From the NCBI GenBank assembly GCA_040285825.1, contig JAUPSS010000001.1, positions 682,001 to 746,000 of the forward strand: DNA of 64,000 bases, given 5' to 3'. Shown here in pieces: positions 7,604 through 64,000 of the stretch (position 1 is its first letter; every line of letters begins with the position of its first letter). The position numbers were made by a program, and so were the translations under genes. The notes below the pieces were generated by a model, which was not told where the DNA came from, searched no databases, and saw only the letters and a list, made by a program, of their open reading frames with translations. The stretch is from Eukaryota sp. TZLM1-RC. Lineage: Eukaryota > Protista > Metamonada: BaSk clade.

Positions 7604-10600
7604 ATGGTTAAGCCCGTACTTTCGTCACTTCTACTACCTGCTACCTTGTTCGTTTGTCTTTTATCTAGACAATCTTATTTCTTATTTGCTTTTGTTCCTT
7701 CGCTTTTTCTTGCTATTAAGTTTCCGAATCAGAAATAGCCCCCGCTGCTCTCTTTTGCATTATCCTTTCTTGGTTTAGTCGCTTCTGCAGTAATCATTCC
7801 ATTTGACCTCCCCCTTCTTCAGTCTTTATATATAGGTACTTGTTCTGATTCACTATGTATACCACCATTTGCGTACTATGGTTCACTTGTTTTCTTGTTA
7901 TTCATCTATCTTCGACTGCAACCTTCTTCATGCACGCTCTCATGCACAACTGCTTCTATTAGTGTAGCATCTGTAATTTCTTTTTTCTCATGTGGATTAG
8001 TATTAATTGCTACCTTCTTTTACCTTTCACCTTGGCTGATTCCGTTGCTGATATATGGAATGATTCTGATTATTTTTAAATTAAGAACTTGTGGTTTTAA
8101 ACGAGGTTATAGAGTTTTATTATTTTCTATTATTTCAATTAATTTAACATTTATTTCTTTTTCTAAACAACCAAGAGCTGTGACGTTACTTTCAGCAGCT
8201 TTCTTTCTATTTTTGAACCCTTTTGGTCTATTGGTGACGTTTTCGCCACGTCAGCATAGGTACTTTTTGAAATTTTTGAGAATTATTTACACAATTGACC
8301 ACTCTATTATTGTTTTTACTGCATCTTTATTAATCACCTTAAATTTACCTACAGTTCCATTTATTTTACTATTCTTATTATCAGTTCATTATATTCTTCA
8401 TCCTTTATCATCAAATAAAAAAATTACAAATTTGGTGTTATTTATTTCTTTTGGTTTTGTTTTACTATTTTATTCCACTTTCTCTTCCTTTATTTCCTCA
8501 ATCTGTGATTCTCAATTCGCAATTGTGTTGGGCGTTTGTCAGACCCAATCTTATTATTATTCAGTTATTATCTTTATTTTAATTTCTTCTTTATCTCATT
8601 TAAATTATTTACTAAGAAGAATAGATGGTGAAAGTAGAACCTCTTTGTCTTTTCAATCTCCTTTATTCTTAAAATTCAAATCAGTAATTGGAGTTTGCTT
8701 TATTAGCATATACTTGTTATTTAGAGTTTGTTTATTGGAAATTGTTATATTAGCAATCTTTGTGGTTATTGTTTTACTCCCAATTGTTGGAATTCGAAAT
8801 TCTTTAATTGACTTTATAGGATTTTCTAGTTTTGTTTTGGTCATTGCTAGTTTATTTATAATCCAATACACCCCAGTAATGGATTATTTATCCACACTTC
8901 TCCCAGCTCATTATGTAGACGTGATATCACGTTATCATTTTGACCTTTTATTTGATCGATTTGTTTTTCTTATTTTTCCAGTATTATCTTTTGTTTTTCT
9001 TAAGGGAATTGACTTTAATCAGCGCTTCATTTCCCTTTCAAGACCTTCAATTATCAAAAATTTAGTCGTTTTCATTCTAGTAATTTCAACGTTCCAACCA
9101 TATATTTTAAATCTAATTCCGTTAATAATTTGTATTTTTGATTTAACTCTAATCAAACACACAAACAGAACTAGTAGGAAGCTGCTTTATCTAATAACCT
9201 CAATTTTAACAATAACTCGATTAACAATTACTTATTTATCAATAGCATTGCCTCAAGATTTTATTAAAAGTCCCATATTTAAAATATTTGCATTACCCTC
9301 ACTCAACCATTGTGACTCTGTTTTTTGTCTAGAGCATGCTTTAATTTTATTACCTTTGGTTATTCAATTAATCATTTCTACCTCCTTCATCAAATCACCT
9401 TCCCCATCAATCACGTCACCTGTGATTGCTTTATTTACATCTCAATTCCAACTACTTGGCCCAGCTTTCATGCATACAGTGGCAGTAGTGTTTGCTTGGG
9501 TATCTATTCTATCTATAAGAGATCCTTTTTCTATTATTCTAGGAGCTTCCTGTTTAGGCTTTCTTAGTTCTCATCATTGGAGACATCGGAAAAAACTTGT
9601 TTGGTTGGTTCTGTTGGGGTTAGTGTTTGGGGTTGTTTCCAAAATTTTGTTGTCTTCTTTATGTGATCTCTATCCTGATCTCCATTCTTCATGGCCAAAA
9701 TTTTACGAATTTTTCGGAGTGTCTTGCACATCCAACTCTTTCCTTTTTCACTTCAGTTTCCCCATTTTAGCCATATTTTGCCTCTATAGGTCCATGGCCA
9801 ATCCCCTTGACTTGAGCTTATACTGCCCCGAAACTGAGGATGAAGTTTCTCCCATCGCTTTTAAAATTGAAAAGTTTTTGTTACCGCTTTTAAGACCTTG
9901 TCTAATTATTTTATTGTTCTTTATCGGTGTTCAACGTGCATCTGTTCCTGCTTTGCTTTACGTAATTGTAGCACTTTGGTTGGTGTATTCGGACTCTGTT
10001 TTTACTGAGCTGAAAAGGGCAAAAACTTTCACGTTTTGTTTGTATATTTTAAACTGCTCTGTTTTGATTTCACAATCAATATTTCAGTTGAGCTTTTTCA
10101 GTGAATCTTCTGATCTCTTCTCGATCTCTTCTATTCTAGGTCTAGATCAATACCATTCTTACTACTCGGCGCTCAAATTATCAGCTTCACTTTTGGATTT
10201 CATTGTCCACGGCATCTCTTCTTCTTTGGATGTATTGGTTTACTCTGCTTCCTTTAAAAGATATCTTTCTTCAGTTAAAACCAGCAGAGATTTGGCCATC
10301 CAACGAGTCTTGGATGATGAAAAGTTAAGTAAGCTTAGGCGGGAAAGAATTTTAAAGCAACAGTTAACAGAGAAGGAAGCTACTGAAAGCAGATTGGAAA
10401 TGTTAAAGTCCAAAAGACTTGGTAAAAGAGATACATCAGCTCGTCAAATATTTGAAGAAGAGATCAAAGCACATCAGGACGTTTTAAGTGATTTGTCAAG
10501 TAGTGCAGAAGAGATCAAAAAGGATCATGATGACCTGTCAGGTCAAGAGAAGTCAAGTGACGTTGACGTATCTACTGATCAGAAACTTGATGAAGAGGTC

Positions 10601-12899
10601 ACACCAGATCAAGATGACACGTCTGAGCCTCAACCATCATTTTTACTTCGAATGGCAACCAAACTTCAGTCAATCATTTTGAACTTCTTCAATATCAACA
10701 TTTCTGACCTACCACCACGTCATCAAACGTCACCATTACGTTGGTTAAAGCACAATATTTATAGATACTCTTCTGTATTGTCTTGCTTGCTGTGCTATCT
10801 CGCTGCTTTGTGGTTTCCTTCAATTCATACTGTGATGATTGCTTTCACCACGATCACTTTTGGTTTAATGTCCAAATATGGAGGCAAAGCTAGGTTTTGG
10901 CAGTTTATTTTGGGAATTTATCTATCTTTATTATTAATCCATTACATTTTCACCTTTCCTTTCTTTTGTTTTTGCGTTTCGCCATCAGATTCAATTACCA
11001 TTTCCCTTGGTAAGTCATGTCTAGATCCCACCAAGTGTCCTGTTCCAAGGGAGCTTATCGATCCATCCAGTCACCCCTCAGCCCTAAGTTCGCAACTCAT
11101 TTACCTTGTTGGTATTGATCCTATAGGCAGCTTCCTCTTCTCCTTCCCTCCCTTGCTGATTGCTGCATTGGGTATCGTTTTTCATCGATCTATCTCGTTT
11201 AGAATGGGCAGGTGGGGAATTGATGTAGAGGAGAGAGTTGGGGTTCGTCAAGTTTGGGGTAGGGTCGTGGTCTTCTTCAAGACTCTAATGGAGAAGCGTT
11301 TCGACGCTATTGGAGTAGACCTCTACCCATTTATGTTTTTTATTGATATACTGCAGTTAATTGCGCTTCCATTTGCCTTTTTTAGTAGCTCAACAGCTTC
11401 CCAGTCGGTAATCCAATCAGTCCAGCTCAGTTATTTACCTGGTTTCCTTGCAATTTGGTTGATTGTTCAGTTTCTGTTAATCATTATTGATAGAACTCTT
11501 TTCTATTTGAGATTTGCAAGACTCAAAGCTCTGGTTCATTTCATTTCTAATTTCACTGTGTTAATTGTTTTTGTTTAATTTTCCCCGCAGTAATCACGAA
11601 TTACCAATTAATGCACCTTTTCTCCTAGTCGCGGCCTTTCTGCGGTTTGTGGCTGCCGTGTTGAGCTCTCTACAACTTCGTTTTGGTTTTCCGCCACCTT
11701 CTTCCAAAGCCTTTTTGATGAAGTCTTACGGTTCTTTTAATAATTATGGATACCAAGCCTTTAGAGTCATTCCTTTTCTTTATGAAATGAAATGTTTGTT
11801 GGATTGGTCTTTGACTACTACTGCTTTGGAATTTAATTACTGGATGCGAATAGAAGATATTTATTCATCGTTGTTTTTAATCAAATGCAGAAGGTTATCT
11901 ACAGCGAAAAGGGGTCGAAATTTTGGTGACCCACAACCAAAATTTGACAAATTTTCGCAAGGTTTTCTTTTGTTTTTCGGTCTTACGCTTTTATTATGTT
12001 TGCCCTTAATTTTATTTAGTTCTGCTAACCCAGTCTCCAAACCAAACCCTATCCAACAGGCTAGTATTGATGTAAGTTTCAATAACTACTTGCCCATTTT
12101 CTCTCAGCATGAAGTGCACAAAGTCGATGTTATCCTGGCTACACAATACAATGCAATTGTTAACCAACACTCCTTGCTCCGCGATTCTAACCGTGCAGAT
12201 GTACGAAAGATTACCTTTTTCACTTCATCTGATTCTGTGTGGACCATTGCTCCTCCTGCCATGAACGGGCTAGTAGAAGCTTTGGAGGATGGAAGGGGAG
12301 TAGTATCTGTTACTTTGTCGTTTAACAGACACTATCCAAGCGATAGGAGGACAGCAAAGGGATGGTACTCGTTCAATTTAGATCATGAACATTGTTTAGA
12401 GTTGGCCAAGTTATTTTCTGGTGATTTAGAAGAAGTAACAATACCTTTACTTCCAAGAGCTGCATTAATTCCTCTGGCCGAATCACCAATCTTTTCTGAT
12501 CAACGTGAGGATACTCTCATTCAGCGTAGAGAGCGTGACGGACAGACTTATTGGTTGATCAAGGATGCTGATTCAAGAGAACCATTCTATATGTATACTT
12601 ATAGTTTAGAATCGACCGCTGCACTTGGTGCTTATGCCAGCGGGGGTTTGATTGGATTGTATCTATCAATTGTGATTGGTGTTGGTAGGTTTGTTCGACT
12701 TTCATTTTCGGACAGCAAATCCCAAATTTTTGTTTCGGCTCTCCCAAATGTGGATAAATTACTTGAAATCTGTGAGGATTTGTTCCTGGCCAGGAGTATC
12801 TCAGATTTGGTGCTTGAAGAATCAATTTACAAGGAAATCATTCAGATATATAGAGATCCAGATACTTTGATTGAATTAACCACACCACCAGTTAAATAG
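7604..12899 (+). pseudogene. PIEZO: Piezo-family mechanosensitive channel, copy 1 (disrupted)
   Basis: Multi-TM protein with the Piezo motif PFLYEMKCLLDWSLTTTALEFNYWMRIEDIY and C-terminal GLYLSIVIGVGRFVR...LPNVDKLLEICEDLFLAR. TGG>TAG at ~7736, ~410-nt deletion at ~7942 relative to copy 3, frameshift at ~11570. Confidence 0.9.
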
Positions 12900-15060: not shown

Positions 15061-15110
15061 TTCAAAAATCTTCAGTATTATTTTAAAAGGTGCCGAAATT
15101 TTCCATCTTT

Positions 15111-15268
15111 ATTTATTTATTTTCTACGAGGAATCAAATAAAAACAAAACAAACTAAAACACATAAGAAACTAAATTCTCCACGCCAACTCTTGATGAAT
15201 CCTTATAAAGTTTGGACATCATTAAACTCAAGTACTTGGGAACATTTCTGTACGAAGCGAAAATGAAA
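15111..15268 (-). mobile_element. Family A 3'-terminal fragment
   Basis: YRNVPKYLSLMMSKLYKDSSRVGVENLVSYVF* plus 3' UTR, as at 24255-24400. Confidence 0.85.
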
Positions 15269-15575: not shown

Positions 15576-17822
15576 ATGCTCTCGTGTCCACATTGTTCAA
15601 TGGATTTCAACGAAGAGTCTCGTGTGCCACTGGTAGTTTGCAGTCAGCGCCATAGTGTATGCGGTGTATGTTCTGATGCTGTGGAATCCTGTCCGATCTG
15701 CAATGAAGATATCCTGCCGTCACCGGAAGTCAACCTCAGTTTGCGCGATATAGCCAAAGCTTCTTGCAAGGAGGACCTCTGTGTACACATTCCCTCTAAC
15801 CAGGTCAGACTTTTGCACATGATTGGACAAGGAGGATATGCACAGGTGTTTGCCGCTTCTTGGTTTGGATCAGACGTCGCCGCCAAGACTGTTGCTCTCA
15901 CAGAAGAAGGTAAGAAACGACTGAGGAAAGAGATTGGTATTATGGCCAAGATTGATCATCCCTTTATCCTTCGCGTTTTTGGTCTGGTCAGCTTAATGGA
16001 CAGACTCGCCATAATTATGGAACTTGCTGAAGGTTCTCTGTCAGTGCCGTCAAGATTGACTAAACAAAGTCTCTTGTTTGCCAAGAAGATCTGCCAGGCA
16101 GTCCGTTTTCTGCACTCCAAATCACTTGCGCATGGAGATCTCAAGCCCGAAAACATTCTTTTTGTCAATGGGCAAATCAAATTAGCCGATTTTGGAACAT
16201 CCAGGACTGTTGCCAAGACTTCCACGGCCACGAATCTATCATGTACAGCACGGTATGCAGCCTTGGAACAGTTTGAGAACAAATTATCTCTTGCCTCAGA
16301 CATCTATGCGATTGGAATCATCCTTTGTGAGTTACTTTGTAATTATAGGCCATTTGTCAATATGGATCAGCTTGCCATAATGGGAGCTAAGTATTTCAAG
16401 ACACCATTTGCTTTGGGTGAACACGTTCCCAGTGTGCTCAAAGAATTAATCGCCCAATGTTGCTCTTCAGATCCAGCTGCCAGACCAAGTATTGCTCAAG
16501 TTCTTCTAGTTTTGGATCAATTGGATGACTTTGCTGAAGAAGGTGATGAAAATCCTGTTAGTATTAACAATGATGTTCAAACGCAACTGCAATCTGCAAA
16601 CTCCACAATCGAGTCTCTACGAAAGAATGTTGCTGATTTGGAGGCTTCCAATCAACAACTCACCAACGATTTGACAGAACGGGATTCCAGAATTGCCCGG
16701 TTGGAAGAAGAAAGGGCCGGTATCAATGCCTCCAATCAACACCTCAGTCACTCTTTGGAAGAACGTGATGCTAGAATTGCCACCATGGAAGAAGCTTTAA
16801 ATGCCAGCAAGGCCGTTATTGCCGAGAAAGATACAGAAAATGCCAACCTTAGATCTACCATTGATGAATTGGAAAAGCAAAATACTCTACTCAGTAGAAC
16901 TAATTCTGATTTAGCAAGCAAAATTGCTGACCTTGAAGCGTTGTTGAGAGAGTGCCATTGTAATCAATCTTTGAACAATATCGATGATCATCATCCTCCA
17001 TCTAAGGAAGAAATTTTGGAAGACATCAAGTCGAATGTAAATTGGAATGGATTGGGGGATAAGGTGAAGAAGAGTGTTGAGGGTTTGGTTGATGGTTCCA
17101 TCACTGAATTGGATCTTCGGGGCAACAACATTACCTCTGAAGACGCTAGTGCTCTCGCCCGTGCTCTGGAGAGCAATTCCACTCTGACTAAATTGGAACT
17201 TGGGAACAACAACATCACCTCTGAAGGCGCTAGTGCTCTCGCCCGTGCTCTGGAGAGTAATTCCACTCTGACTAAATTGGATCTTTGGGGCAACAACATT
17301 ACCGCTGAAGGCGCTAGTGCTCTCGCCCGTGCTCTGGAGAGCAATTCCACTCTGACTAAATTGGATCTTCAGAACAACAACATTACCTCTGAAGGCGCTA
17401 GTGCTCTCGCCCGTGCTCTGGAGAGCAATTCCACTCTGACTACATTGGATCTTAGCTCCAACACCATTACCTCTGAAGGCGCTAGTGCTCTCGCCCGTGC
17501 TCTGGAGAGCAATTCCACTCTGACTAAATTGGATCTTGAGTCCAACTACATTACCTCTGAAGGCGCTTGTGCTCTCGCCCGTGCTCTGGAGAGCAATTCC
17601 ACTCTGACTGGATTGGATCTTCGGTTCAACAACATTACCGATGAAGGCGCTAGTGCTCTCGCCCGTGCTCTGGAGAGCAATTCCTTTTTCACTTTTTTTC
17701 AGAAAAAGCGCAATTCCACTCTGACTACATTGGATCTTATGTGGAACAACATTAGCAATCCAACCCAATCCAAACTTCGACAAATAGCATCTAATCGTTC
17801 TTCTCCCCGAATTTTCGTTTAA
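15576..17822 (+). CDS. RING - protein kinase (TKL-like) - coiled coil - RI-type LRR protein (8 LRRs)
   Basis: N-terminal CPHC..CSQRHSVCGVC..CPIC; kinase motifs GQGGYAQV, VAAK, HGDLKPEN, DFG; heptad coiled coil; 28-aa repeats LTxLxLxxNxITSEGASALARALESNST. Intact 748-aa ORF. Confidence 0.9.
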   Translation: MLSCPHCSMDFNEESRVPLVVCSQRHSVCGVCSDAVESCPICNEDILPSPEVNLSLRDIAKASCKEDLCVHIPSNQVRLLHMIGQGGYAQVFAASWFGSDVAAKTVALTEEGKKRLRKEIGIMAKIDHPFILRVFGLVSLMDRLAIIMELAEGSLSVPSRLTKQSLLFAKKICQAVRFLHSKSLAHGDLKPENILFVNGQIKLADFGTSRTVAKTSTATNLSCTARYAALEQFENKLSLASDIYAIGIILCELLCNYRPFVNMDQLAIMGAKYFKTPFALGEHVPSVLKELIAQCCSSDPAARPSIAQVLLVLDQLDDFAEEGDENPVSINNDVQTQLQSANSTIESLRKNVADLEASNQQLTNDLTERDSRIARLEEERAGINASNQHLSHSLEERDARIATMEEALNASKAVIAEKDTENANLRSTIDELEKQNTLLSRTNSDLASKIADLEALLRECHCNQSLNNIDDHHPPSKEEILEDIKSNVNWNGLGDKVKKSVEGLVDGSITELDLRGNNITSEDASALARALESNSTLTKLELGNNNITSEGASALARALESNSTLTKLDLWGNNITAEGASALARALESNSTLTKLDLQNNNITSEGASALARALESNSTLTTLDLSSNTITSEGASALARALESNSTLTKLDLESNYITSEGACALARALESNSTLTGLDLRFNNITDEGASALARALESNSFFTFFQKKRNSTLTTLDLMWNNISNPTQSKLRQIASNRSSPRIFV
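17103..17753 (+). repeat. 84-bp tandem LRR-coding array (8 units, last partial)
   Basis: Direct 84-nt periodicity with one 33-nt in-frame insertion. Confidence 0.95.
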
Positions 17823-17932: not shown

Positions 17933-18200
17933 GCCAACATCGTAGTCCAGTGGGTTTGCTCTTCGTTCTCTGCTTTGGCAACAGGGTTCGAATCCTATCA
18001 GCTGCACTTCTGGCAAAAGGGGACCCCAAAGTGGGAGCCAGCATTTCCTTTCCCACTTTCCGGGTCTGACTGCATGGTGCTTGATCAATGAGGGTGATTC
18101 TGAAGATTGGGCATTTTAGGTTTTTGTGGATCTTGATTTTGCATGTTATTCGCAAAAATTTCCTTTTGTGAGAAATTGTTGCTGTAATTTTTTAACAAAT
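17933..18200 (+). mobile_element. tRNA-headed SINE-like or Pol III element
   Basis: A-box TAGTCCAGTGG (17943-17953) and B-box GGTTCGAATCC (17985-17995) at tRNA spacing, no foldable cloverleaf, then a structured GC-richer body. Confidence 0.55.
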
Positions 18201-18209
18201 ATATATTTA

Positions 18210-18605
18210 TTTTCTGCGAATAATCAAGTCAAATCAAAAGAAACTAAAGCACATAAGAAACAAAATTATTTGGGAACACTTCTGTACAAGGCGAAAATGA
18301 TACGATTCTTCCATAAATTCCCTGCAAAATTCTCACCACTTGAACGACATAAATTATCAAAATCATTGAGAAAATTCAAGGCAGACTGTCCAATGTTGCC
18401 AAAAATCGAGAAGCAAAAAGGAACAAATGAAAACTTGGAGTAAAGGTTATTATTTAAATCATTTAATATTTCAGTATATTTATCTCTCTTACGATCTTCA
18501 GCCTTGTTTAAATGGCCATTAGTACTAAGTAAAACATCATCGCGATAACACAAAGCAAAGGGATCAACTGTAGTGAAATCAACAACAACTTGAGAGGAAT
18601 CCACA
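18210..18605 (-). mobile_element. Family A 5'-truncated RLE/3' fragment
   Basis: VVVDFTTVDP...KRDKY...FSFVPF...WKNRIIFALYRSVPK. Confidence 0.85.
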
Positions 18606-18619
18606 AAATTTCCATCTTT

Positions 18620-20429: not shown

Positions 20430-21164
20430 ATGAAACTAACTGTTATAGGCCACTGGGCAGGATATCCTAAAGCTAATGACGCTACCTCTGGTTATTTGCT
20501 CCAGCACGATGGTTTCAATGTTCTTATTGATTGTGGTAGTGGTGTATTGTCCAACATGTTGCACTTCGTTTCTTACACCGAACTGCATGCAGTTGTCATC
20601 TCCCACTACCACCATGATCATATTGCTGACGTAGGTCCACTACAATACGCTAGGCTAGTGGAAACACAGCTAGGCAAGGTGAATTCTCCACTCAAAGTAT
20701 ATGGCCCATCGTATGATCAGGATACACTGTCAAAGTTAAAGAAACCTCCATTTGTTGACACTGTTCCATATGACCCGCAAAGCCGAAAAACAATAGGTCC
20801 GTTTGAGTTGGAATTTCATGAAAATATCCACTCAATTAAATCATTTGCCATTAAGGCTACTTGTGGATCCAAATCAGTAGCTTATTCAGGAGACACTGCC
20901 TATCATGAGACATTGGCAGAGTTTGTTAGTGATGTAGATTTGTTCATTTGCGAGGCGAGCTTCTATCCTTGGCAAGATGCAGTGCCTTATGGACACTTAA
21001 CAAGTACAGAAGCAGCGAGAATTGCTCAAAAAGCGTCAGTAAATCATCTTTTACTTACACATTTACCTCACTTCGGAAATGTAAACGAGTTGCTTGAGGA
21101 TGCTAAGAAACATTTCGAACAGAGAACGAGTCTGGCATTCAAAGGGTGGTGTTGTGAGATATAG
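20430..21164 (+). CDS. Metallo-beta-lactamase-fold hydrolase, YhfI/RNase Z-like, bacterial type
   Basis: MKLTVIGHWAGYP..ATSGYLL..LIDCGSG, SHYHHDH, YSGDT, GHLT, LLLTH; intact ORF. Confidence 0.85.
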   Translation: MKLTVIGHWAGYPKANDATSGYLLQHDGFNVLIDCGSGVLSNMLHFVSYTELHAVVISHYHHDHIADVGPLQYARLVETQLGKVNSPLKVYGPSYDQDTLSKLKKPPFVDTVPYDPQSRKTIGPFELEFHENIHSIKSFAIKATCGSKSVAYSGDTAYHETLAEFVSDVDLFICEASFYPWQDAVPYGHLTSTEAARIAQKASVNHLLLTHLPHFGNVNELLEDAKKHFEQRTSLAFKGWCCEI

Positions 21165-21364: not shown

Positions 21365-22133
21365 TTATAAGTCAAGTTTGAGACAACTTTTGACAAATTT
21401 CTTCAAAAAAGATTTCTTGACAAATTCAGGATCTTGGTTGACATTCCAATGCCCGTACTTTCTATAACAAGAAGGGTCGTTTTTCCTATCACACTTGTCG
21501 CCAAACTTGCACTTATAAGGAATCACTGGTATAGGTTCATGGGAAAAAGTGAAGCGGTGAAGAGGATCCTTAAGACTTTCGCAACTTACCCCATGTTCAC
21601 ATACTTCCAGCTCAACGTGGTCAAATAGTCTGCAGTGTTCCTCGTTTTCCACATCTTTACAAAATCCTGAATATCGACAAATATGTTTAAACCCCCTTAA
21701 ATGCTTCGCTCCCTCGGAGGTCTTTCCCATATGATCCACATAGTAATACTCGCAGGTATAAGGATTAGGACATTGAGGTAGTCCTGAGTTTATATTAGCA
21801 ACATTTTTAGTAATAGAGGAAGATCTTGGTTTTTGAAACGATTTTGTGGATGTAAAATGTTGAAAAAATGTTCGATGGGATAGTGAAGCCAACTGGTTAC
21901 AATTTTTAAAGGTACAACGTGGAACATGGTGAAATTTTGAAATATGATCTCTTTCATCAACACGTTGGCAGGGAAAGAGCAAATCATGACATGGAAGCAT
22001 AAAATTTCGAGAATTTTGAATTAAATCGTATTTAATTAAATCTTGGCATTGTGCTAGACAATCCCCAAATCCACTAAATATAATTGAATCAAAAAACTTG
22101 TGGAAAATGGAAAGTACAAATGATAAAATAGTC
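21365..22133 (-). pseudogene. C-terminal PBZ zinc-finger fragment of the PARG gene
   Basis: Matches 36367-37133; no 5' portion present. Confidence 0.8.
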
Positions 22134-24042
22134 ACCTTTTTTTCTTTTTATTAATCACCTTAAATTTACCTACAGTTCCATTTATTTTACTATTCTTATT
22201 ATCAGTTCATTATATTCTTCATCCTTTATCATCAAATAAAAAAATTACAAATTTGGTGTTATTTATTTCTTTTGGTTTTGTTTTACTATTTTATTCCACT
22301 TTCTCTTCTTTTATTTCCTCAATCTGTGATTCTCAATTCGTAATTGTGTTGGGCGTTTGTAAGACCCAATCTTATTATTATTCAGTTATTATCTTTATTT
22401 TAATTTCTTCTTTATCTCATTTAAATTATTTACTAAGAAGAATAGATGGTGAAAGTAGAACCTCTTTGTCTTTTCAATCTCCTTTATTCTTAAAATTCAA
22501 ATCAGTAATTGGAGTTTGCTTTATTAGCATATACTTGTTATTTAGAGTTTGTTTATTGGAAATTGTTATATTAGCAATCTTTGTGGTTATTGTTTTACTC
22601 CCAATTGTTGGAATTCGAAATTCTTTAATTGACTTTATCGGATTTTCTAGTTTGGTTCTGGTCATTGCTAGTTTATTTATAATCCAATACACCCCAGTAA
22701 TGGATTATTTATCCACACTTCTCCCAGCTCATTATGTTGACGTGATATCACGTTATCATTTTGACCTTTTATTTGATCGATTTGTTTTTCTTATTTTTCC
22801 AGTATTATCTTTTGTTTTTCTTAAGGGAATTGACTTTAATCAGCGCTTCATTTCCCTTTCAAGACCTTCAATTATCAAAAATTTAGTCGTTTTCATTCTA
22901 GTAATTTCAACATTCCAACCATATATTCTAAATCTAATTCCGTTAATAATTTGTATTTTTGATTTAACTCTAATCAAACACACAAACAGAACTAGTAGGA
23001 AGCTGCTTTATCTAATAACCTCAATTTTAACAATAACTCGATTAACAATTACTTATTTATCAATAGCATTGCCTCAAGATTTTATTAAAAATCCCATATT
23101 TAAAATATTTGCATTACCCTCACTCAACCATTGTGACTCTGTTTTTTGTCTAGAGCATGCTTTAATTTTATTACCTTTGGTTATTCAATTAATCATTTCT
23201 ACCTCCTTCATCAAATCACCTTCCCCATCAATCACGTCGCCTGTGATTGCTTTATTTACATCGCAATTCCAACTACTTGGCCCAGCTTTCATGCATACAG
23301 TGGCAGTAGTGTTTGCTTGGGTATCTATTCTATCTATAAGAGATCCTTTTTCTATTATTCTAGGAGCTTCCTGTTTAGGCTTTTTTAGTTCTCATCATTG
23401 GAGACATCGGAAAAAACTTGTTTGGTTGGTTCTGTTGGGGTTAGTGTTTGGGGTTGTTTCCAAAATTTTGTTGTCTTCTTTATGTGATCTCTATCCTGAT
23501 CTCCATTCTTCATGGCCGAAATTTTACGAATTTTTCGGAGTGTCTTGCACATCCAACTCTTTCCTTTTTCACTTCAGTTTCCCCATTTTAGCCATATTTT
23601 GCCTCTATAGGTCCATGGCCAATCCCCTTGACTTGAGCTTATACCGCCCCGAAACTGAAGATGAAGTTTCTCCCATCGCTTTTAAAATTGAAAAGTTTTT
23701 GTTACCGCTTTTAAGACCTTGTCTAATTATTTTATTGTTCTTTATCGGTGTTCAACGTGCATCTGTTCCTGCTTTGCTTTACGTAATTGTAGCACTTTGG
23801 TTGGTATATTCGGACTCTGTTTTTACTGAGCTGAAAAGGGCAACGTTGGTTAAAGCACAATATCTATAGATACTCTTCTGTATTGTCTTGCTTGCTGTGC
23901 TATCTCGCTGCTTTGTGGTTTCCTTCAATTCCCACCGTGATGATTGCTTTCACCACGATCACTTTTGGTTTAATGTCCAAATATGGAGGCAAAGCTAGGT
24001 TTTGGCAGTTTATTTTGGGAATTTATCTATCTTTATTATTAA

Positions 24043-27000
24043 TGAAAAGTTAATTTATTGAATTTGCACACTTGATTAAATTAAATCATAACTAATGGGA
24101 CGACTATCATTAAACCAAGATTTCCTCTACAAAATCTTGATTTGCTTGCTGTCTAGCTAAAGCTTCTCTAATTCGATTGAAAAACCGCGGTAATCTATTA
24201 ATAATGGCAAATTGAATCCGTGAACGCCATAAAAAAATATCAAATCTTTTCATTTATTTATTTTCTACGAAGAATCAAATAGAACAAACTAAAACACATA
24301 AGAAACTAAATTCTCCACGCCAACTCTTGATGAATCCTTATAAAGTTTAGACATCATTAAACTCAAGTACTTGGGAACACTTCTGTACAAAGCGAAAATG
24401 ATACGATTTTTCCATAAATTCTCTGCAAAATTCTTACCACTTGAACGACATAAATTACCAAAATCATTGATGAAATTCAAGGCGGATTGTCCAATGTTGC
24501 CAAAAATCGAAAAGGCAAAAGGAACAAACGAAAACTTCGAATAAAGGTTCTTATTTAAATCATTTAATATCTCAGTATATTTATCTCTCTTACGATCTTC
24601 AGCCTTGATTAAATGACCATTAGTACTAAGTAAAACATCATCGCGATAAACAAAAGCAAAGGGATCAACTGTAGTGAAATCAACAACAACTTGAGAGGAA
24701 TCCACAAAAGGAGCAATTAAATCACCTCGACGTGAATTAAAAAGATTATCATCACTATAATGCTTCAACAAAGGTTCTACTTTGCAACTAAAATTGTAAC
24801 ACTTGAACATCTCATATGTCACATCACGAACGGCATTATGAAGAACTGACCTATATTGGAGAAATTTCTTACAGCTCACAATATGACGAAAATTGGCAGT
24901 AGGTTTTTTGTTACAAATACAATAAGAATTGTCCAAAAGACCACTTGGATACATCCCTAATCTCAACCGCATGTTTTGTTTCCAAGCTTCATTTGTTAAG
25001 TGAAGACCAAATGGCCTTGGTTGCTGAGATATTAAACTAGTACAGTTCTGAATGTCTGATAAAAAGGCAGCAAAGACGGGATTATTAATCTTAGTCACAC
25101 TAAGTCGTTTAGAAAAATCCAGGTCTTCAAAACCAATAAGAACAGACTTCTGTAATTTCACAACAGCAAGATGAAGGTTGGTGAAAGATCTCGAAGGCAC
25201 AGCAGGCAAACTTGAAGGAAAACTCCTATTCCAAACATCAACAGGTAGTTCTTGCACCATTTTGTCAAGAGAAATTAATAAAGGATGTGATTCATTCAAA
25301 GGAATATGATCAAAACGAAGTTTCCATTCAAAAGAAAATTTTTCATACCACCAATAAAAGCACTTTTGCATAAATACTCTGCTTTTGAAAAACCAACTCC
25401 ACCAAATTTAGGACTAAAAAATGCATGATAAGGAATTTTAGACGGACAAACTTCTACTAAATTTCCTAAGAAATTTGTTCTCAAAGTATTGAATTGACGT
25501 GCAAAATCATGAGAAATTGTGGGAGATAAAGAACGAAGAAGATGATTAATTTTTGACCCAAAACACACATTGAGGACCGAAAACGCTAAATGTTTGTCAA
25601 TTTGTAGATCTTGAATAGCCAAAAGTTGCTCTTCGATTTTTTCCAAAATACCTGACAAAATCGATTTAACTTTTTCACTATTTCCAAAATAAGATCCAAG
25701 AAACCGAATAGCATCTTCCTCGTAATCAACGTATTTGATAAAAGTTTCATTAAATGCCACCTCCGCATGCTGATTACCAATAATGAAACACTTGGGCAAT
25801 TTAATGTCTAACCCTATTTGTTTGGCCAGAAAAACAAAATGTTGTAAAACCGTGTTGTAAAAAGAGACAAAGGGCCAATAAGTGATAAATCATCTGCATA
25901 AGCACATATATGAATGTCAGGAAAATCCGACTTAAATTTTACCAAAACTGATTGCAGTGCTAAGCAAAAGAAAAATGGACCCAATGGATCCCCTTGTTTG
26001 ACCCCTCTTGACGAAACAATATTCTCAGAATGAAAAATTAAGTTAGAGGGTGATCCATACATCAATTTAAAATACGGCAAAAGTGGAGGATAGTGTAGTT
26101 CAAGTTCATGCAAAATACTGGAGCGAAAAACGGAGTTGAAAGCATTTTTAAAATCAATGTTCAATAAATAATTTTCGCCTTTTTGATTGAAAAGTAAATC
26201 TGTACACAACGCAGCACATGTTGTGCCATCAGGAATTCCGATAGCAAACTGATAAGGACGAAAAAAATTAATTGCGGATGACTTAACTCTTTTAAAAGAA
26301 ATAATTGCTAATAATCTCGTTATGGACTCACCAACAGCAATAGGTCTGACACCACCTCCAGGCTTATTTAAAGCAACTAAACGAGATGCCATTAACGCCT
26401 GTGGTAACTTGAAACGTCCCATGATGACACTATTAAAAAAAGAAAAACTAAATCATCCACGATTTCTGGACATATGTTGACTGCGGACTTCAAATGATCA
26501 TAACTAAGTCCAGAAGGCCCAGCAGAACGACCAGACGGAAGTCCTTTAATAGCTACACTAACTTCATCACAAGTGATAGGATTAGCAGTGAAGAAATCAC
26601 GTTCATTATCAGAGACTATGTGATTTATGGTGAAGTCTTCATGTGGATGAAGAGAATTTAAAGAATCCAATGTTTCATCATTGAAGGCAGCAGGAGAAGA
26701 ACCAGCCAATAATTTAAGTGCTGAAGAGTATTGTGAACGAAGAATCAAAGACTCAAAGCGCTTTTTTGACATTTTTAGATTGTGGAACCGACTTCTTATA
26801 TTTAGATTTCTTGTGTGAAGACATAGCCTTAGAAAGAAAAAATTTCCAAAAAATCGAAGGATTCCAAATGCCCTTTCGAAGAGAGAAGGTTAAAGATCGA
26901 ATAACTGTTGCAAGAGAAGACGAATGAGCAGGAGAAACGAATTGAGGGATTGCAAATGGAGGTCTACAAGGATCAATTGGCGTGCAAGAATCACAAACCA

Positions 27001-28032
27001 AAAGAGGTCGACCCGAAACATTGAATCCAGAAACTGGAGAACAACAGAACAAACATGATTTTGTATTACTACTGACTGAAGACGAATGAAGTATCTGTGG
27101 AGGCTCAATAGACTCAATAGGTGAAGATAATGATGCCAATACAGCTTCATCTGACAAAACTTTTCGCCGAGAACATGTTGTTTTTGTGTGACCAACAGTT
27201 TTGCACAAAGAACAGGTAGTCACAGAATTCTTAGGGCGTCCTCTAGAAGGTTTTGACGTAACTGACTTCGGAGGCATAGATAAGCATGGAGGGAGAAAAA
27301 AAAATCTTTTCATTGTTTTTTCTTTCACCATTTTTTGGAAGTCATCCAAAAAAGTTTCTGCTTCAACTGATAATCTTCCATTTATCGAAAATGGGAAAGC
27401 AATAAAAACCAGCTGTGTATTTCTATCGACATTTGCATCTTCAATTTCTTTATCATATTTTCTATGTTTTTCTTTTGCTTTAAAATCCAGAGCAGCCACA
27501 GGATTAAGTTTTTTTCTGTGAACCAAAGTATCGTTGGCAACATTACATGAGACAAAGTCAACAATAGCTTCAGAATTATCAATCCAATCACAGTATACAT
27601 CACCTCTATCATCAGAACCAAAATTATTCAGAGAAAGTGTTTCCTTCAGCAGGGGCTCTTTGATACACGATATCCTTGCAGTTTGTGCCATATTGAAAAC
27701 AGTGTCTCTAACAGCATCATGTAATGAAGAACGATAAGTTATCAATTTAGAGCCATTTAGAGCATGGCGCAAAGTGAGTTGAGGTGAATTCGAACAAATA
27801 CATTTTTCTTTTGATAATAATTGGTTAATGGGCATGTTCAAATATAATCTCATTTTTGTTACAAATGCTTCATTAGTAGCACACAATCCAAATCTTCGTG
27901 GTACAATGGTTACAAAAAGTGAAGAATCTGACATCTTGTTTTCACAAACACCCTTTTCCAATAACAATGAGTGAAGATCTTGATTTAAAACAGCCTAGCT
28001 GCAAATATTATTATAAAGATCTTTTTCATACA
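24043..28032 (-). mobile_element. Family C 5'-truncated retrotransposon inserted in Piezo and interrupted by family A
   Basis: Family C sequence at 27302-28032 and 24043-24254 (CICSNS, HDAVRD, RGDVY, KEKHRKY). TSD at 24033-24042 and 28033-28042. Confidence 0.85.
24255..27301 (-). mobile_element. Full-length CRE-like RLE non-LTR retrotransposon, family A (~3.05 kb, single frameshifted ORF 27277-24289)
   Basis: AT-hook RGRP; knuckle CSLCKTVGHTKTTC; C4 finger; RT (RPIAVGE, IDFKNAFNS, GVKQGDPLGP, YADD); CIC..H..C; HNAVRD; RGDL..VVDFT..KRDKY. 13-bp TSD aaatcttttcatt at 24242-24254 and 27302-27314. Confidence 0.9.
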
Positions 28033-30362: not shown

Positions 30363-30732
30363 AGACTACATTGAATCTTTGACTACATTGGATCTTTTGG
30401 ACAGCAACATTACCTCTGAAGGCGCTAGTGCTCTCGCCCGTGCTCTGGAGAGCAATTCCACTCTGACTGAATTGAATCTTGTGTGCATCAACATTACTGA
30501 TGAAGGTGCTAGTGCTCTCGCCCGTGCTCTGGAGAGCAATTCCTCTCTGACTACATTGTATCTTGGGGACAGCAACATTACCTCTGAAGGCGCTAGTGCT
30601 CTCGCCCGTGCTCTGGAGAGCAATTCCACTTTGACTAGATTGTATCTTCAGCGCAACAACATTAGCAATCCAACCAAATCCAAACTTCGACAAATAGCAT
30701 CTAATCGTCCTTCTCTCCGAATTTTCGTGTAA
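30363..30732 (+). pseudogene. Orphan LRR cassette (4 repeats + C-terminal cap) with no kinase
   Basis: Same 84-nt framework and C-terminus as 15576-17822; no ATG start. Confidence 0.85.
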
Positions 30733-31502: not shown

Positions 31503-31748
31503 GCCCGTGCTCTGGAGAGCAATTCCACTCTGACTGAATTGGATCTTCAGTACAACAACATTACCTCTGAAGGCGCTTGTGCTCTCGCCCGTGCTCTGGA
31601 GCGCAATTCCTTTTTCACTTTTTTTCAGAAAAAGCGCAATTCCACTCTGACTACATTGGATCTTTTGAACAACAACATTAGCAATCCAACCCAATCCAAA
31701 CTTCGACAAATAGCATCTAATCGTCCTTCTCTCCGAATTTTCGTTTAA
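31503..31748 (+). pseudogene. Orphan LRR cassette (2 variable segments + cap) fused to a family A fragment
   Basis: Junction aacaacaac|gcccgtgct; carries the same 33-nt insert as copy 1. Confidence 0.85.
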
Positions 31749-35447: not shown

Positions 35448-36181
35448 ATGAAACTAACTGTTATAGGCCACTGGGCAGGATATCCTAAAGCTAATGACGC
35501 TACCTCTGGTTATTTGCTCCAGCACGATGGTTTCAATGTTCTTATTGATTGTGGTAGTGGTGTATTGTCCAACATGTTGCACTTCGTTTCTTACACCGAA
35601 CTGCATGCAGTTGTCATCTCCCACTACCACCATGATCATATTGCTGACGTAGGTCCACTACAATACGCTAGGCTAGTGGAAACACAGCTAGGCAAGGTGA
35701 ATTCTCCACTCAAAGTATATGGCCCATCGTATGATCAGGATACACTGTCAAAGTTAAAGAAACCTCCATTTGTTGACACTGTTCCATATGACCCGCACAG
35801 CCGAAAAACAATAGGTCCGTTTGAGTTGGAATTTCATGAAAATATCCACTCAATTAAATCATTTGCCATTAAGGCTACTTGTGGATCCAAATCAGTAGCT
35901 TATTCAGGAGACACTGCCTATCATGAGACATTGGCAGAGTTTGTGAGTGATGTAGATTTGTTCATTTGCGAGGCGAGCTTCTATCCTTGGCAAGATGCAG
36001 TGCCTTATGGACACTTAACAAGTACAGAAGCAGCGAGAATTGCTCAAAAAGCGTCAGTAAATCTCTTCTACTTACACATTTACCTCACTTCGGAAATGTA
36101 AACGAGTTGCTTGAGGATGCTAAGAAACATTTCGAACAGAGAACGAGTCTGGCATTCAAAGGGTGGTGTTGTGAGATATAG
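35448..36181 (+). pseudogene. Second MBL hydrolase copy, frameshifted
   Basis: 1-nt deletion near 36064 relative to 20430-21164. Confidence 0.75.
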
Positions 36182-46952: not shown

Positions 46953-47719
46953 AGAAATTACAACTACTCATTTGTTAAATTGTAAACATTTTATTACTTT
47001 TAGAAGCAAGGTTCATGATGCTGTAAGAGACCAGTTATATTGTATGTGTAAATCTCATAGAATTGAATCCTTCTTGGAACCTTTGTTGTCAAATCTGTTT
47101 GATGCTGAAAATGATTTTCATAAGAATAATAGAGGTGATGTCATATTACCTGGATTAGATGGAAGCTTCATTTTATTGGATGTAATGTCTGTTGATCCTT
47201 GTAATGCCTCAAATGAAAGGCTTGTTAATTCTGAAATTCATAATCCCCTTTCAAATGCTGAAAATTTTAAATTCAAAAATACAATGAACCTTTGTCCAAA
47301 TTGGCCAGTCTACAGCATGCAAAATACAATTTGTATCCATTTGTATTTTCCCTTTTTGGTTCACTTGCACCAGCTGCTTTACGTTTTTTGGATGATTTTG
47401 AAATGATTGTAAAGAGAAGAACTGGCAGAAATTTCAACAGATTGTTTTGGCAAAATAGAATTGTGTTTTCTATTTTTAAGGGGATGTTGAAGATGGTTTC
47501 TGATGCTTTGCTTTCTCTTGGATCTCACTATGAGAGAGTTGCATCTAGTGTTTATGTTTTGGGAGAGATGGATTTTTTAGATGTTGATTTATAGGTTTAG
47601 AATAAAATTAAATTGTTTAAAAAAAATTCAATAAATACATATATTCAATGTTCGATTTTCACTTTTCGTTCAGGTTCAGGTGTTGACGAAAGATCATATC
47701 TCAACTACACCTTGGAACC

Positions 47720-53847: not shown

Positions 53848-55290
53848 GATTCCAGAATTGCCCGGTTGGAAGAAGAAAGGGCCGGTATCAATGCCTCCAA
53901 TCAACACCTCAGTCACTCTTTGGAAGAACGTGATGCTAGAATTGCCACCATGGAAGAAGCTTTAAATGCCAGCAAGGCCTGTATTGCTGAGAAAGATACA
54001 GAAATTGCCAACCTTAGATCTACCATTGATGAATTGGAAAATCAAAATACTCTACTCAGTAGAACTAATTCTGATTTAGCCAGCAGAATTGCTGATCTTG
54101 AAGCATTGTTGAGAGAGTGCCATTGTAATCAACCTTTGAACAATATCGATGATCATCATCCTCCATCAAAGGAAGAAATTTTGGAAGACATCAAGTCGAA
54201 TGTAAATTGGAATGGATTGGGGGATAAGGTGAAGAAGGGTGTTGAGGGTTTGGTTGATGGTTCCATCACTGAATTGGATCTTTTTTGGAACAACATTACC
54301 TCTGAAGGCGCTAGTGCTCTCGCCCGTGCTCTGGAGAGAAATTCCACTCTGACTGAATTGAATCTTGAGTGCAACAACATTACCTCCGAAGGCGCTAGTG
54401 CTCTCGCCCGTGCTCTGGAGAGAAATTCCACTCTGACTGAATTGAATCTTGAGTGCAACAACATTACCTCCGAAGGCGCTAGTGCTCTCGCCCATGCTCT
54501 GGAGAGAAATTCCACTCTGACTGAATTGAATCTTGAGTGCAACAACATTACCTCCGAAGGCGCTAGTGCTCTCGCCCATGCTCTGGAGAGAAATTCCACT
54601 CTGACTGAATTGAATCTTCGGTCCAACAAAATTACCTCCGAAGGCGCTAGTGCTCTCGCCCGTGCTCTGGAGAGCAATTCTTCTCTGACTGAATTGAATC
54701 TTCGGTCCAACAAAATTACCTCCGAAGGCGCTAGTGCTCTCGCCCGTGCTCTGGAGAGCAATTCTTCTCTGACTGAATTGAATCTTCGGTACAACCACAT
54801 TACCGATGAAGGCGCTAGTGCACTCGCCCGTGCTATGGAGAGAAATTCCACTCTGACTAAATTGAATCTTGTGAACAACAACATTACCTCTGAAGGCGTT
54901 AGTGCTCTCGCCCGTGCTCTGGAGAGAAATTCCACTCTGACTACATTGTATCTTTGGAACAACAACATTACCGATGAAGGCGCTAGTGCACTCGCCCGTG
55001 CTATGGAGAGAAATTCCACTCTGACTACATTGTATCTTGTGAACAACAACATTACCTCTGAAGGCGTTAGTGCTCTCGCCCGTGCTCTGGAGAGAAATTC
55101 CACTCTGACTACATTGTATCTTTGGAACAACAACATTACCTCTGAAGGCGCTAGTGCTCTCGCCCGTGCTCTGGAGAGCAATTCCACTCTGACTGAATTG
55201 GATCTTCGGTACAACAAAATTAGCAATTCAACCAAATCCAAACTTCGACAAGTAGCATCTAATCGTCCCTCTCTCCGAATTTTCGTTTAA
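53848..55290 (+). pseudogene. 5'-truncated kinase-LRR family copy (coiled coil + 12 LRRs)
   Basis: Begins within the coiled coil (gattccagaattgcc); open to the native stop; an in-frame ATG is available at 53950. Confidence 0.8.
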
Positions 55291-61405: not shown

Positions 61406-64000
61406 TTAAACGACAATGCGAAGAGAAGGACGATTAGATGCTATTTGTTGAAGTCTGGATTTGGTTGAATTGCAAATGTTGTTGTACTGAAGACTCAATG
61501 TAGTCAGAGTGGAATTGCTCTCCAGAGCACGGGCGAGAGCACTAGCGCCTTCAGAGGTAATGTTGTTGTACTGAAGATTCAATTCAATCAGAGTGGAATT
61601 GCTCTCCAGAGCACGGGCGAGAGCACTAGCGCCTATAGAGGTAATGTTGTTGGACCAAAGATGCAATTCAATCAGAGTGGAATTGCTCTCCAGAGCACGG
61701 GCGAGAGCACTAGCGCCTTCAGAGGTAATTTTGTTGGACTCAAGATTCAATATAGTCAGAGAGGAATTGCTCTCCAGAGCACGGGCGAGAGCACTAGCGC
61801 CTTCAGAGGTAATTTTGTTGGACTCAAGATTCAATATAGTCAGAGAGGAATTGCTCTCCAGAGCACGGGCGAGAGCACTAGCGCCTATAGAGGTAATGTT
61901 GTTGCCCCCAAGATCCAATTCAGTCAGAGTGGAATTGCTCTCCAGAGCACGGGCGAGAGCACTAGCACCTTCAGAGGTAATGTTGTTGCCCCCAAGATCC
62001 AATTTAGTCAGAGTGGAATTGCTCTCCAGAGCACGGGCGAGAGCACTAGCACCTTCAGAGGTAATGTTGTTGCCCCCAAGATCCAATTTAGTCAGAGTGG
62101 AATTGCTCTCCAGAGCACGGGCGAGAGCACTAGCGCCTTCAGAGGTAATGTTGTTGCCCTCAAGATTCAATTCAGTCAGAGTGGAATTGCTCTCCAGAGC
62201 ACGGGCGAGAGCACTAGCGCCTTCAGAGGTAATGTTGTTGAGACGAAGACCCAATCTAGTCAGAGTGGAATTGTTCTCCAAAGCACGGGCGAGAGAACTA
62301 GCGCCTTCAGAGGTAATGTTGTTGGACTGAAGATGCAATATAGTCAGAGTGGAATTCCTCTCCAGAGCACGGGCGAGAGCACTAGCGCCTTCAGTGGTAA
62401 TGTTGTTGCTCACAAGATACAATTTAGTCAGAGTGGAATTCCTCTCCAGAGCACGGGCGAGAGCACTAACGCCTTCAGAGGTAATTTTGTTGCCCGAAAG
62501 ATACAATGTAGTCAGAGTGGAATTGCTCTCCAGAGCACGGGCGAGAGCACTAGCGTCTTCAGAGGTAATTTCGTTGTCCTGAAGATACAATTTAGTGATG
62601 GAACCATTAACCAAACCCTCAACACCCTTCTTCACCCTATCCCCCAAACCATTCCAATTTACATTCGACTTGATGTCTTCCAAAATTTCTTCCTTTGATG
62701 GAGGATGATGATCATCGATATTGTTCAAAGGTTGATTACAATGGCACTTTCTCAACAACGCTTCAAGGTCAGCAATTCTGCTTGCTAAGTCAGAATTAGT
62801 TCTACTGAGTAGAGTATTTTGCTTTTCCAATTCATCAATGGTAGATCTAAGGTTGGCAATTTCTGTATCTTTCTCAGCAATACCGGCTTTGCTGGCATTT
62901 AAAGCTTCTTCCATGGTGGCAATTCTAGCATCACGTTCTTCCAAAGAGTGACTGAGGTGTTGATTGGAGGCATTGATACCGGCCCTTTCTTCTTCCAACC
63001 GGGCAATTCTGGAATCCCGTTCTGTCAAATCGTTGGTGAGTTGTTGATTGGAAGCCTCCAAATCAGTAACATTCTTTCGTAGAGACTCGATTGTGGAGTT
63101 GGCAGATTGCAGTTGCGTTTGAACATCATTGTTAATATTAATAGGATTTTCATCACCTTCTTCAGCAAAGTCATCCAATTGATCCAAAACTAGAAGAACT
63201 TGAGCAATACTTGGTCTGGCAGCTGGATCTGAAGAGCAACATTGGGCGATTAATTCTTTGAGCACACTGGGAACATGTTCACCCAAAGCAAATGGTGTCT
63301 TAAAATACTTAGCTCCCATTATGGCAAGCTGATCCATATTGACAAATGGCCTATAATTACAAAGTAACTCACAAAGGATTATTCCAATTGCATAGATGTC
63401 TGAGGCAAGAGACAATTTGTTCTCAAACTGTTCCAAGGCTGCATACCGTGCTGTACATGATAGATTGGTAGCCGTGGAAGTCTTGGCAACAGTCCTGGAT
63501 GTTCCAAAATCGGCTAATTTGATTTGCCCATTGACAAAAAGAATGTTTTCGGGCTTGAGATCTCCGTGTGCAAGAAATTTGGAGTGCAGGAAACGGACTG
63601 CCTGGCAGATCTTCTTGGCAAACAAGAGACTTTGTTTACTCAACCTTGACGGCACTGGCAGAGAACCTTCAGCAAGTTCCATAATTATGGCAAGTCTGTC
63701 CATTAAGCTGACCAGACCAAAAACACGGAGGATAAAGGGATGATCAATCTTGGCCATGATACCAATCTCTTTCCTCAGTCGTTTCTTACCTTCTTCTGTG
63801 AGAGCAACAGTCTTGGCGGCGACGTCTGAATCAAACCAAGAAGCAGCAAACACCTGGGCATATCCTCCTTGACCAATCATGTGCAAAAGTTTGACCTGGT
63901 TAGAGGGAATGTGTACACAGAGGTCCTCCTTGCAAGAAGCTTTGGCTATATCGCGCAAACTGAGGTTGACTTCCGGTGACGGCAGGATATCTTCATTGCA
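61406..64000 (-). CDS. RING-kinase-coiled-coil-LRR protein with 14 LRRs (start lies beyond the window)
   Basis: Open frame, highly similar to 15576-17822 outside the LRRs. Confidence 0.9.
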   Translation of the reverse strand, partial: CNEDILPSPEVNLSLRDIAKASCKEDLCVHIPSNQVKLLHMIGQGGYAQVFAASWFDSDVAAKTVALTEEGKKRLRKEIGIMAKIDHPFILRVFGLVSLMDRLAIIMELAEGSLPVPSRLSKQSLLFAKKICQAVRFLHSKFLAHGDLKPENILFVNGQIKLADFGTSRTVAKTSTATNLSCTARYAALEQFENKLSLASDIYAIGIILCELLCNYRPFVNMDQLAIMGAKYFKTPFALGEHVPSVLKELIAQCCSSDPAARPSIAQVLLVLDQLDDFAEEGDENPININNDVQTQLQSANSTIESLRKNVTDLEASNQQLTNDLTERDSRIARLEEERAGINASNQHLSHSLEERDARIATMEEALNASKAGIAEKDTEIANLRSTIDELEKQNTLLSRTNSDLASRIADLEALLRKCHCNQPLNNIDDHHPPSKEEILEDIKSNVNWNGLGDRVKKGVEGLVNGSITKLYLQDNEITSEDASALARALESNSTLTTLYLSGNKITSEGVSALARALERNSTLTKLYLVSNNITTEGASALARALERNSTLTILHLQSNNITSEGASSLARALENNSTLTRLGLRLNNITSEGASALARALESNSTLTELNLEGNNITSEGASALARALESNSTLTKLDLGGNNITSEGASALARALESNSTLTKLDLGGNNITSEGASALARALESNSTLTELDLGGNNITSIGASALARALESNSSLTILNLESNKITSEGASALARALESNSSLTILNLESNKITSEGASALARALESNSTLIELHLWSNNITSIGASALARALESNSTLIELNLQYNNITSEGASALARALESNSTLTTLSLQYNNICNSTKSRLQQIASNRPSLRIVV

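Follow-up and report, generated by a model that had tools for sequence, protein, structure and literature searches.

A clustered RING-kinase-LRR gene family of a metamonad with hypervariable repeat codons and retrotransposon-bounded copies

Introduction

Fungal HIC NLRs (the Podospora NWD/HET-D/HET-E proteins with WD40 repeats, and NLRs with TPR or ANK repeats) carry four hypervariable positions per repeat, evolve in concert, exchange repeats between genes and are associated with transposable elements (TEs) (PMC4986451, PMC13449251). The TE association of HIC receptors in fungi is a correlation (PMC13449251). [quoted passage not shown] The immune receptors of free-living protists, on the other hand, are barely known.

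Diversity-generating retroelements (DGRs) are recognized by adenine-specific variation, an invariant template repeat and a reverse transcriptase (RT) class of their own. Chimeras made by LINE 3' transduction or template switching bear target-site duplications (TSDs), an A-rich tail and a 5' truncation with microhomology, with the passenger lying inside. LINE-1 chimeras are treated in PMC13174262.

Here we describe a gene family found in a 64,000-nt stretch (hereafter the window) of the genome of strain TZLM1-RC. The strain, which we take to be Skoliomonas litria, is a free-living anaerobic protist belonging to the metamonads. Its genome was assembled from nanopore data and then polished using Illumina reads; the article describing it makes no mention of LRRs (10.1101/2023.05.03.539051).

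Results and discussion

A RING-kinase-LRR protein without a central NTPase

The gene that we take as the reference of the family (P0001) comprises the following features.

15576..17822, plus strand: intact RING-kinase-coiled coil-LRR gene, 748 aa
15585..15701, plus strand: C3HC4 RING-like finger, residues 4-42, found by pattern match (zf-RING_5 E 0.0034, under the cut-off)
15807..16520, plus strand: TKL-like protein kinase in which a Gly loop, a catalytic Lys, an HxD loop and a DFG motif are all present
16569..16955, plus strand: long coiled coil, residues 332-460, an unbroken helix in the AF2 model
17103..17753, plus strand: RI-type LRR array of 7 full 84-nt units and a terminal strand, followed by the C-cap to 17822
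17674..17717, plus strand: in-frame T-rich insertion of 22 nt (17685-17706), flanked by a duplication of 11 bp

The predicted protein thus runs from a RING-like finger through a TKL-like kinase, a 130-residue helix and an N-cap to RI-type LRRs and a C-cap. The spacing of the finger fits C3HC4, yet its Pfam score is under the cut-off (E 0.003). The nearest solved relatives of the kinase are TAK1 and B-Raf. The kinase precedes the LRRs, which are 28-aa RI-type units at the C-terminus of one intronless ORF. Neither a Pfam match to NACHT/NB-ARC nor a Walker A motif was found in P0001, and no membrane span was detected outside the kinase fold, to which the hydrophobic peaks are confined. The NACHT-less RING-kinase-coiled coil-LRR architecture proposed from the sequence alone was therefore borne out by the Pfam, motif, model and fold searches. 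A plant-type LRR receptor-like kinase is ruled out by the kinase-then-LRR order and the lack of a membrane span outside the kinase fold. An NLR/STAND receptor was also rejected: the central NTPase is absent, though C-terminal sensor-type repeats and N-terminal effector domains are present. The proteins of this family are probably cytosolic.

In the AF2 model, of which the low-confidence kinase half was left out of use, the best fold match of the LRR region is the NOD2 LRR (rmsd 1.8 over 252 columns), and Pfam recognizes an LRR_6 array. The five variable codons of the unit (X1 to X5) had been placed on the concave beta-strand. This holds for X1 and X2, as a strand is modelled at X1-Leu-X2 in each unit (pLDDT 82-96 in the regular units); X3 and X4 lie instead in the turn after the strand and X5 just past the ladder Asn, that is, in the adjoining loop. 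From established LRR geometry it follows that the X positions are predicted to face the concave binding surface.

The 748-aa product is encoded on a 4.04-Mb contig, and all its close homologues are from the TZLM1-RC genome (assembly GCA_040285825.1). For the two sister Skoliomonas genomes, close LRR relatives were not among the matches listed by length-limited searches of up to 8000 candidates, and a search of a phage collection retrieved generic kinase matches only.

Repeat arrays in the window

The 40 repeats in five arrays reported earlier (17103-17753, 30380-30663, 31503-31680, 54268-55220 and 61476-62597) were recovered as 35 full 84-nt units and five terminal strand-only units. The units match at 91-92% at the DNA level, in line with the HIC-type standard of more than 85% identity between repeats over at least 100 aa. 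Besides P0001, the window contains four copies.

30382..30732, plus strand: orphan LRR fragment of 3 units, terminal and cap, joined to the kinase-gene upstream region at 30175-30365
31503..31748, plus strand: orphan LRR fragment that opens within a unit and is sister to the last part of the 17103 array
53848..55290, plus strand: 5'-truncated copy with part of the coiled coil and 12 LRRs (array 54268-55220)
61406..64000, minus strand: second long copy with kinase-coiled coil and 14 LRRs (array 62596-61476), 5' end beyond the window

The repeat numbers of 8, 12 and 14 were verified, the first consisting of 7 units and the terminal. The genes of only two of the five arrays possess the kinase. 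These two long copies, said to differ at roughly 16 of ~450 residues upstream of the array, show exactly 16 differences over 454 aligned residues. The RING of the copy at 61406-64000 is outside our view because its 5' end runs past the window.

Unit 7 of the 17103-17753 array carries a 33-nt in-frame insertion. The 22-nt T-rich insertion is common to the 31503 fragment (31611-31632), where its flanking duplication is perfect, and occurs nowhere else in the DNA examined; it may represent an extremely truncated retro-insertion. The three units of the 30382 fragment all bear Asn-to-Ser/Ile changes. We considered pseudogene decay and dropped it, as the same variants appear in paralogues with RCC1 domains (see below) and are therefore alleles of a shared pool.

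Diversifying selection at five codons

As the sequence-only reading had suggested, units were extracted and variation was computed per codon. The pooled set contained 103 units in 13 arrays from the window and eight paralogous loci, in which the arrays carry 5-17 units (in one assembly). Divergence concentrated at the five X codons across these 103 units. The framework had been described as nearly invariant, but it is not wholly frozen: codons 12, 20, 24 and 27 are semi-variable (pN 0.18), silent divergence is ~0.045 and the remaining framework has a pN of 0.023, the overall framework range being 0.02-0.05.

The expected dN/dS far above 1 at X was found as well. The five-codon pN was 0.447 against a unit pS of 0.049 (103 units), a ratio of 9.2 (gene bootstrap 7.4-12.1). 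In eight paralogues, the kinase and coiled-coil regions gave a pS of 0.095 and a pN of 0.024, which provide an independent neutral reference and evidence that this effector half is under purifying selection. Without correction, replacement changes at the five X codons accumulate at ~5-9 times the rate of silent sites. These figures are uncorrected counting estimates rather than the output of a recombination-aware codon model or a maximum-likelihood site model. Codons 3 and 5, which are interleaved with the X codons, showed zero silent changes in 103 units. Homogenizing conversion tracts must therefore cover X, and the diversity at X in turn needs selection. Between sister copies of one insertion, the outer flanks differ by 2-3%, the kinase CDS by 3.1%, the framework by 2-6% and X by 30-36%, although the last figure measures array turnover, since position-matched units need not be orthologous. 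In light of these data, the sequences point to a family subject to both concerted evolution and diversifying selection, a signature known from receptors engaged in an arms race.

Could the variation be a neutral by-product of recent amplification, with the exposed residues merely unconstrained? Broken duplicates (of Piezo, coiled-coil genes and LINEs) do abound in the region, and three of the five window arrays are truncated. Relaxation, however, predicts pN to be similar to pS, whereas X is above 0.049, 0.095 and the 2-7% divergence of sister-copy flanks, and simulations at omega 1 gave ~1.7 alleles per codon against the 6-19 observed. Barring strong constraint on the silent sites of units, kinase and flanks alike, neutral relaxation was thus rejected against three baselines (unit pS, kinase paralogue pS and flanks), and we regard it as highly improbable.

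An artefact of assembly or polishing, in which multi-mapping short reads homogenized the framework of older, more diverse repeats, is extremely unlikely. Early nanopore basecalling combined with Illumina polishing (10.1101/2023.05.03.539051) and the frameshifts in neighbouring LINE ORFs make the concern legitimate. Nevertheless, long reads span arrays shorter than 1.5 kb, polishing would flatten X too, the reading frames remain open and the X residues fit the profile of 374 unrelated RI-type units. In addition, short-read contigs of other runs, which cover the array in short pieces, differ little. The assembly may contain errors in the exact order and number of units. The diversifying repeat family itself is well supported.

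Third bases at the variable codons and the question of a mutator

The third bases of the X codons had been described as largely fixed. X1 is NNA throughout the window and in 103 of the 103 pooled units, and X2 is NNT apart from one gaa in the window and in 101/103 pooled units. For X3 (mostly NNG) and X4 (mostly NNC) the rule stands in the window and weakens in the pooled set, where 90/103 and 98/103 codons end in G and C, respectively. X5 ends in C in 80 of the 103 pooled units.

A targeted mutator, either a DGR-like adenine-directed RT or a deaminase-type hypermutator, could rewrite codon positions 1 and 2 at X. In its favour are the low third-position heterozygosities at X1, X2 and X4 (0, 0.04 and 0.09), the small per-site joint probability under a crude equal-fitness model and the richness of the window in RT genes. 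On the other hand, the 52 replacement alleles at X are distributed over positions 1, 2 and 3 as 20, 22 and 10, with 19% expected for position 3; single-base steps join every X allele; and silent divergence at X is 0.074, near the background and far from 0.45. In a coalescent simulation, uniform mutation reproduced the observed ratio of third- to first-plus-second-position heterozygosity (0.155) at omega 20-40, the fit being summed over the five sites (P 0.12-0.39); omega 80 without amino-acid preference was a misfit (P 0.013). The units of Galdieria show X1 as NNA and X2 as NNT in 12/13 cases each. The suggestion of a targeted mutational mechanism is consequently not upheld, as third positions at X resemble background silent sites and carry the expected share of replacements, and we consider such a mutator very unlikely.

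Like DGRs, the family sets variable codons, several of the form NNC or NNT, into an unchanging scaffold and has RT genes close by, but it lacks the adenine pattern, and the RTs in the window are of the non-LTR type. The adenine rule of DGRs does not hold: X1 ends in an unvarying A in 103/103 units, A occupies position 1 of X3 in just 6/103 and the silent As of the framework are constant. No DGR template repeat, DGR-class RT or invariant unit was found in the ~270 kb of the genome examined. Site by site, third-position variation at X1 and X2 is somewhat low; the residue preferences in 374 unrelated RI-type units explain X2 well and X1 less well. The fixed-looking third bases are attributable to a young unit ancestor, high omega and position-specific amino-acid preferences. 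Given the fit of uniform mutation, the single-step alleles and the failed adenine rule, the frozen third bases do not need a special mutator.

Exchange of units within and between genes

Repeat shuffling, which had been proposed, takes place both within and between genes, as judged by the four-gamete test, shared units and nearest neighbours. The four-gamete test was failed by 109 of the 144 column pairs, a count inflated because X mutates recurrently, and linkage between columns is weak except for X3-X4. Among the 103 units, 96 are distinct, no invariant unit exists and 78 distinct five-residue faces are displayed. For 58 of the 103 units, the nearest neighbour resides in a different gene. 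Multi-site haplotypes are common to different genes and contigs (L005/L008 and L008/L009); these shared haplotypes point to exchange between genes.

Copies bounded by a non-LTR retrotransposon

Pieces of a non-LTR retrotransposon, family B, flank the LRR genes.

15100..15110, no strand: left copy of an 11-bp TSD
15111..15266, minus strand: 3'-terminal ~155 nt of family B with an A-rich tail
17940..18000, plus strand: tRNA-like stretch with A-box and B-box look-alikes, found behind LRR genes
18200..18608, minus strand: 5'-truncated 3' end of family B, antisense to the gene
18609..18619, no strand: right copy of the 11-bp TSD
24252..26468, minus strand: longest copy of family B in the window, with three split ORFs and RT, CCHC and restriction-like endonuclease motifs

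Behind most LRR genes, the antisense 3' end of family B begins ~380 nt past the stop, and these LINE pieces are cut at many different element positions at their 5' ends. The P0001 gene sits in a 3.5-kb composite, the 11-bp duplication of which is common to the segmental duplicate L002; the chance of an 11-bp match in random 50-mers is small (P 0.0016). A second, independent composite (7.6 kb in L003 and 11.9 kb in L006) has a 16-bp TSD and microhomology at the truncated end. In both composites the element 3' tail marks one end and the 5' truncation the opposite one. In L009, a solo element is flanked by a 13-bp TSD. A TSD search at L001, L004, L005, L007, L008, the L009 gene, 30732 and 55290 found nothing beyond chance. 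As TSDs are absent at most copies, retrotransposition is documented for two events only. No empty pre-insertion site was found among the paralogous loci examined. We also rejected a common right end at 18608 for all cassettes, since this truncation point is private to the P0001 insertion and the others end elsewhere.

The simplest reading of the composites is target-primed reverse transcription with a template switch. Reverse transcription would begin on the element RNA, switch to an antisense read-through RNA spanning the gene and its upstream region, and break off early within the element. The same composite could arise from nested insertion and subsequent recombination between LINE copies, a route that needs transduction as well. 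The composites are similar to LINE transduction and template-switch chimeras in the TSDs, the A-rich tail at one end and the 5' truncation with microhomology at the other. They differ in that a complete gene in antisense, together with its upstream region, is carried between two element 3' ends, and in that the mover has an endonuclease of the restriction-like type, as judged by its motifs. Retrotransposition is likely the source of new copies, and it is strongly indicated that whole genes and LRR-cap cassettes were copied by a non-LTR retrotransposon and then multiplied by segmental duplication.

ARAGORN and Rfam made no call on the tRNA-like stretch at 17940-18000. L006 (13711-20212) carries the downstream part of this stretch seven times in tandem, linked to the 3' end of the LINE. 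At least three families of non-LTR elements bearing CCHC and restriction-like endonuclease motifs co-exist in the window, and a second family contains tandem ~655-nt duplications (window 42781-45204 and 40990-46953).

Cassette fusions and relatives in the genome

The same cassette of LRRs, cap and 3' flank was found behind a second, 28%-identical RING-kinase; upstream of this fusion, L006 and L010 still retain the beginning of the type A gene. On other contigs, the cassette is fused from mid-unit to RCC1 proteins. Retrotransposed cassettes could be a route to new N-terminal fusions, and we infer that both the second RING-kinase and the RCC1 fusions may have been made in this way. The RCC1-LRR family (L009 10001-13228; P0133, P0136, P0157 and P0197) draws on the same 84-nt pool, cap and 3' flank, with 95% identity to L008. 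A further kinase-LRR relative on another contig, P0011 (P9112_000490), has an N-terminal MLKL_N-like four-helix bundle (E 1.6e-4, under the cut-off), which makes it a possible executor of cell death that carries an LRR sensor of its own.

Neighbouring genes

A metallo-beta-lactamase-fold gene, possibly of bacterial origin, matches the Anti-Pycsar protein Apyc1 (PF23023) at window positions 20430-21164 and 35448-36101 and in L001, L005 and L008. It hits a cyclic nucleotide-degrading phosphodiesterase model (E 3.5e-36, under the cut-off), and at least 10 near-identical copies are co-amplified with the LRR genes. The same duplicated block harbours, at 36367-38370 and 21365-22135 (minus strand), a PARG catalytic domain of the microbial type with Cys/His-rich fingers after it. 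Several copies of a Piezo channel gene, 98-99% identical and split, lie at 7895-12899, 22253-23869, 27898-30006 and 47985-53226; their breaks may be real or nanopore errors.

What the family may recognize

With a probability of about two in three, we read these clustered genes as a young family of recognition proteins in the cytosol, in which the X codons were diversified by ordinary mutation and selection, copies were made by a retrotransposon and the LRR horseshoe binds variable ligands. The ligands would be foreign or modified-self molecules, such as effectors of engulfed bacteria or proteins of viruses or mobile elements. The coiled coil would dimerize the protein or keep it off, and ligand binding would turn on kinase signalling and/or RING-dependent ubiquitylation. 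Binding at the concave face may thereby control the kinase and ubiquitin output.

The same process could serve a non-immune target, namely intragenomic conflict with retrotransposon proteins or nucleases, or self/non-self typing between cells. The RI-type fold is compatible with this possibility, as ribonuclease inhibitor binds RNases, and so are the dense and recently active retrotransposons of the cluster and the allorecognition role of fungal HIC NLRs (PMC4986451). Nonetheless, the co-amplified Apyc1-like hydrolase, the microbial PARG and the MLKL-like kinase-LRR relative (E 1.6e-4) lean to anti-invader defence, and we consider a non-immune target unlikely. We would provisionally rank defence against engulfed bacteria or viruses first and intragenomic or self/non-self conflict second.

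Comparison with known systems and implications

The Skoliomonas family shares with fungal HIC NLRs near-identical repeats, concerted evolution in and between genes, 3-5 selected positions on the binding face, a variable repeat number (here between paralogues), different N-terminal domains on one pool and the TE association. It differs in lacking NACHT/NB-ARC, in its repeat (LRR), in its RING-kinase or RCC1 outputs and in belonging to a unicellular metamonad; moreover, the element link is here a specific TSD-bounded composite. Selected concave-face sites (four there), clustering and rapid birth and death are common to the Ectocarpus candidates (PMC3341825). In those, however, each 24-aa repeat forms an exon, with a ROCO GTPase as the effector, as opposed to 28-aa units in an intronless ORF.

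The arrays of coral NLRC3-like, Mortierella and Galdieria proteins and of a protein of the rotifer Rotaria belong to the same RI-type class (40-60% identity) and vary at the same positions. The coral proteins possess NACHT unlike the Skoliomonas family, the Galdieria proteins pair RI-type LRRs with RING/TRAF fingers, and P0231 of Rotaria (U-box-kinase-LRR) has the same E3-kinase-LRR order. These arrays are older (Galdieria pS 0.135), and the likeness observed is one of repeat class rather than of the DNA pool or the LINE link. In L011 of Galdieria partita, LRR and RING/TRAF genes lie in tandem; their 84-nt units resemble the Skoliomonas unit even in DNA, and the same codons vary.

The most original element of the system is its retrotransposon-bounded copies, the diversification scheme itself being already known. 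A compact, intronless HIC-type scheme is found here in a metamonad, and as it operates without the NTPase that defines NLRs, the scheme is independent of that switch. As the face comprises five residues on a 28-residue scaffold that stays constant, a ligand hunt and specificity mapping become tractable, and the junction marks of retrotransposition at two insertions offer a specific mechanism, open to testing, by which receptors could be born and swap domains. More tentatively, and on balance doubtfully, the genes could form an anticipatory repertoire powered by retrotransposons, in which antisense read-through RNAs of a LINE behind the LRR genes are reverse-transcribed at new sites and bring either whole genes together with their promoters or LRR-cap cassettes that join new effector domains (two RING-kinases, RCC1 and perhaps the MLKL-like kinase), and unit conversion rewrites the faces quickly enough for variation within a clonal culture. 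If this is true, a single-celled metamonad would possess an anticipatory immune repertoire free of NTPases.
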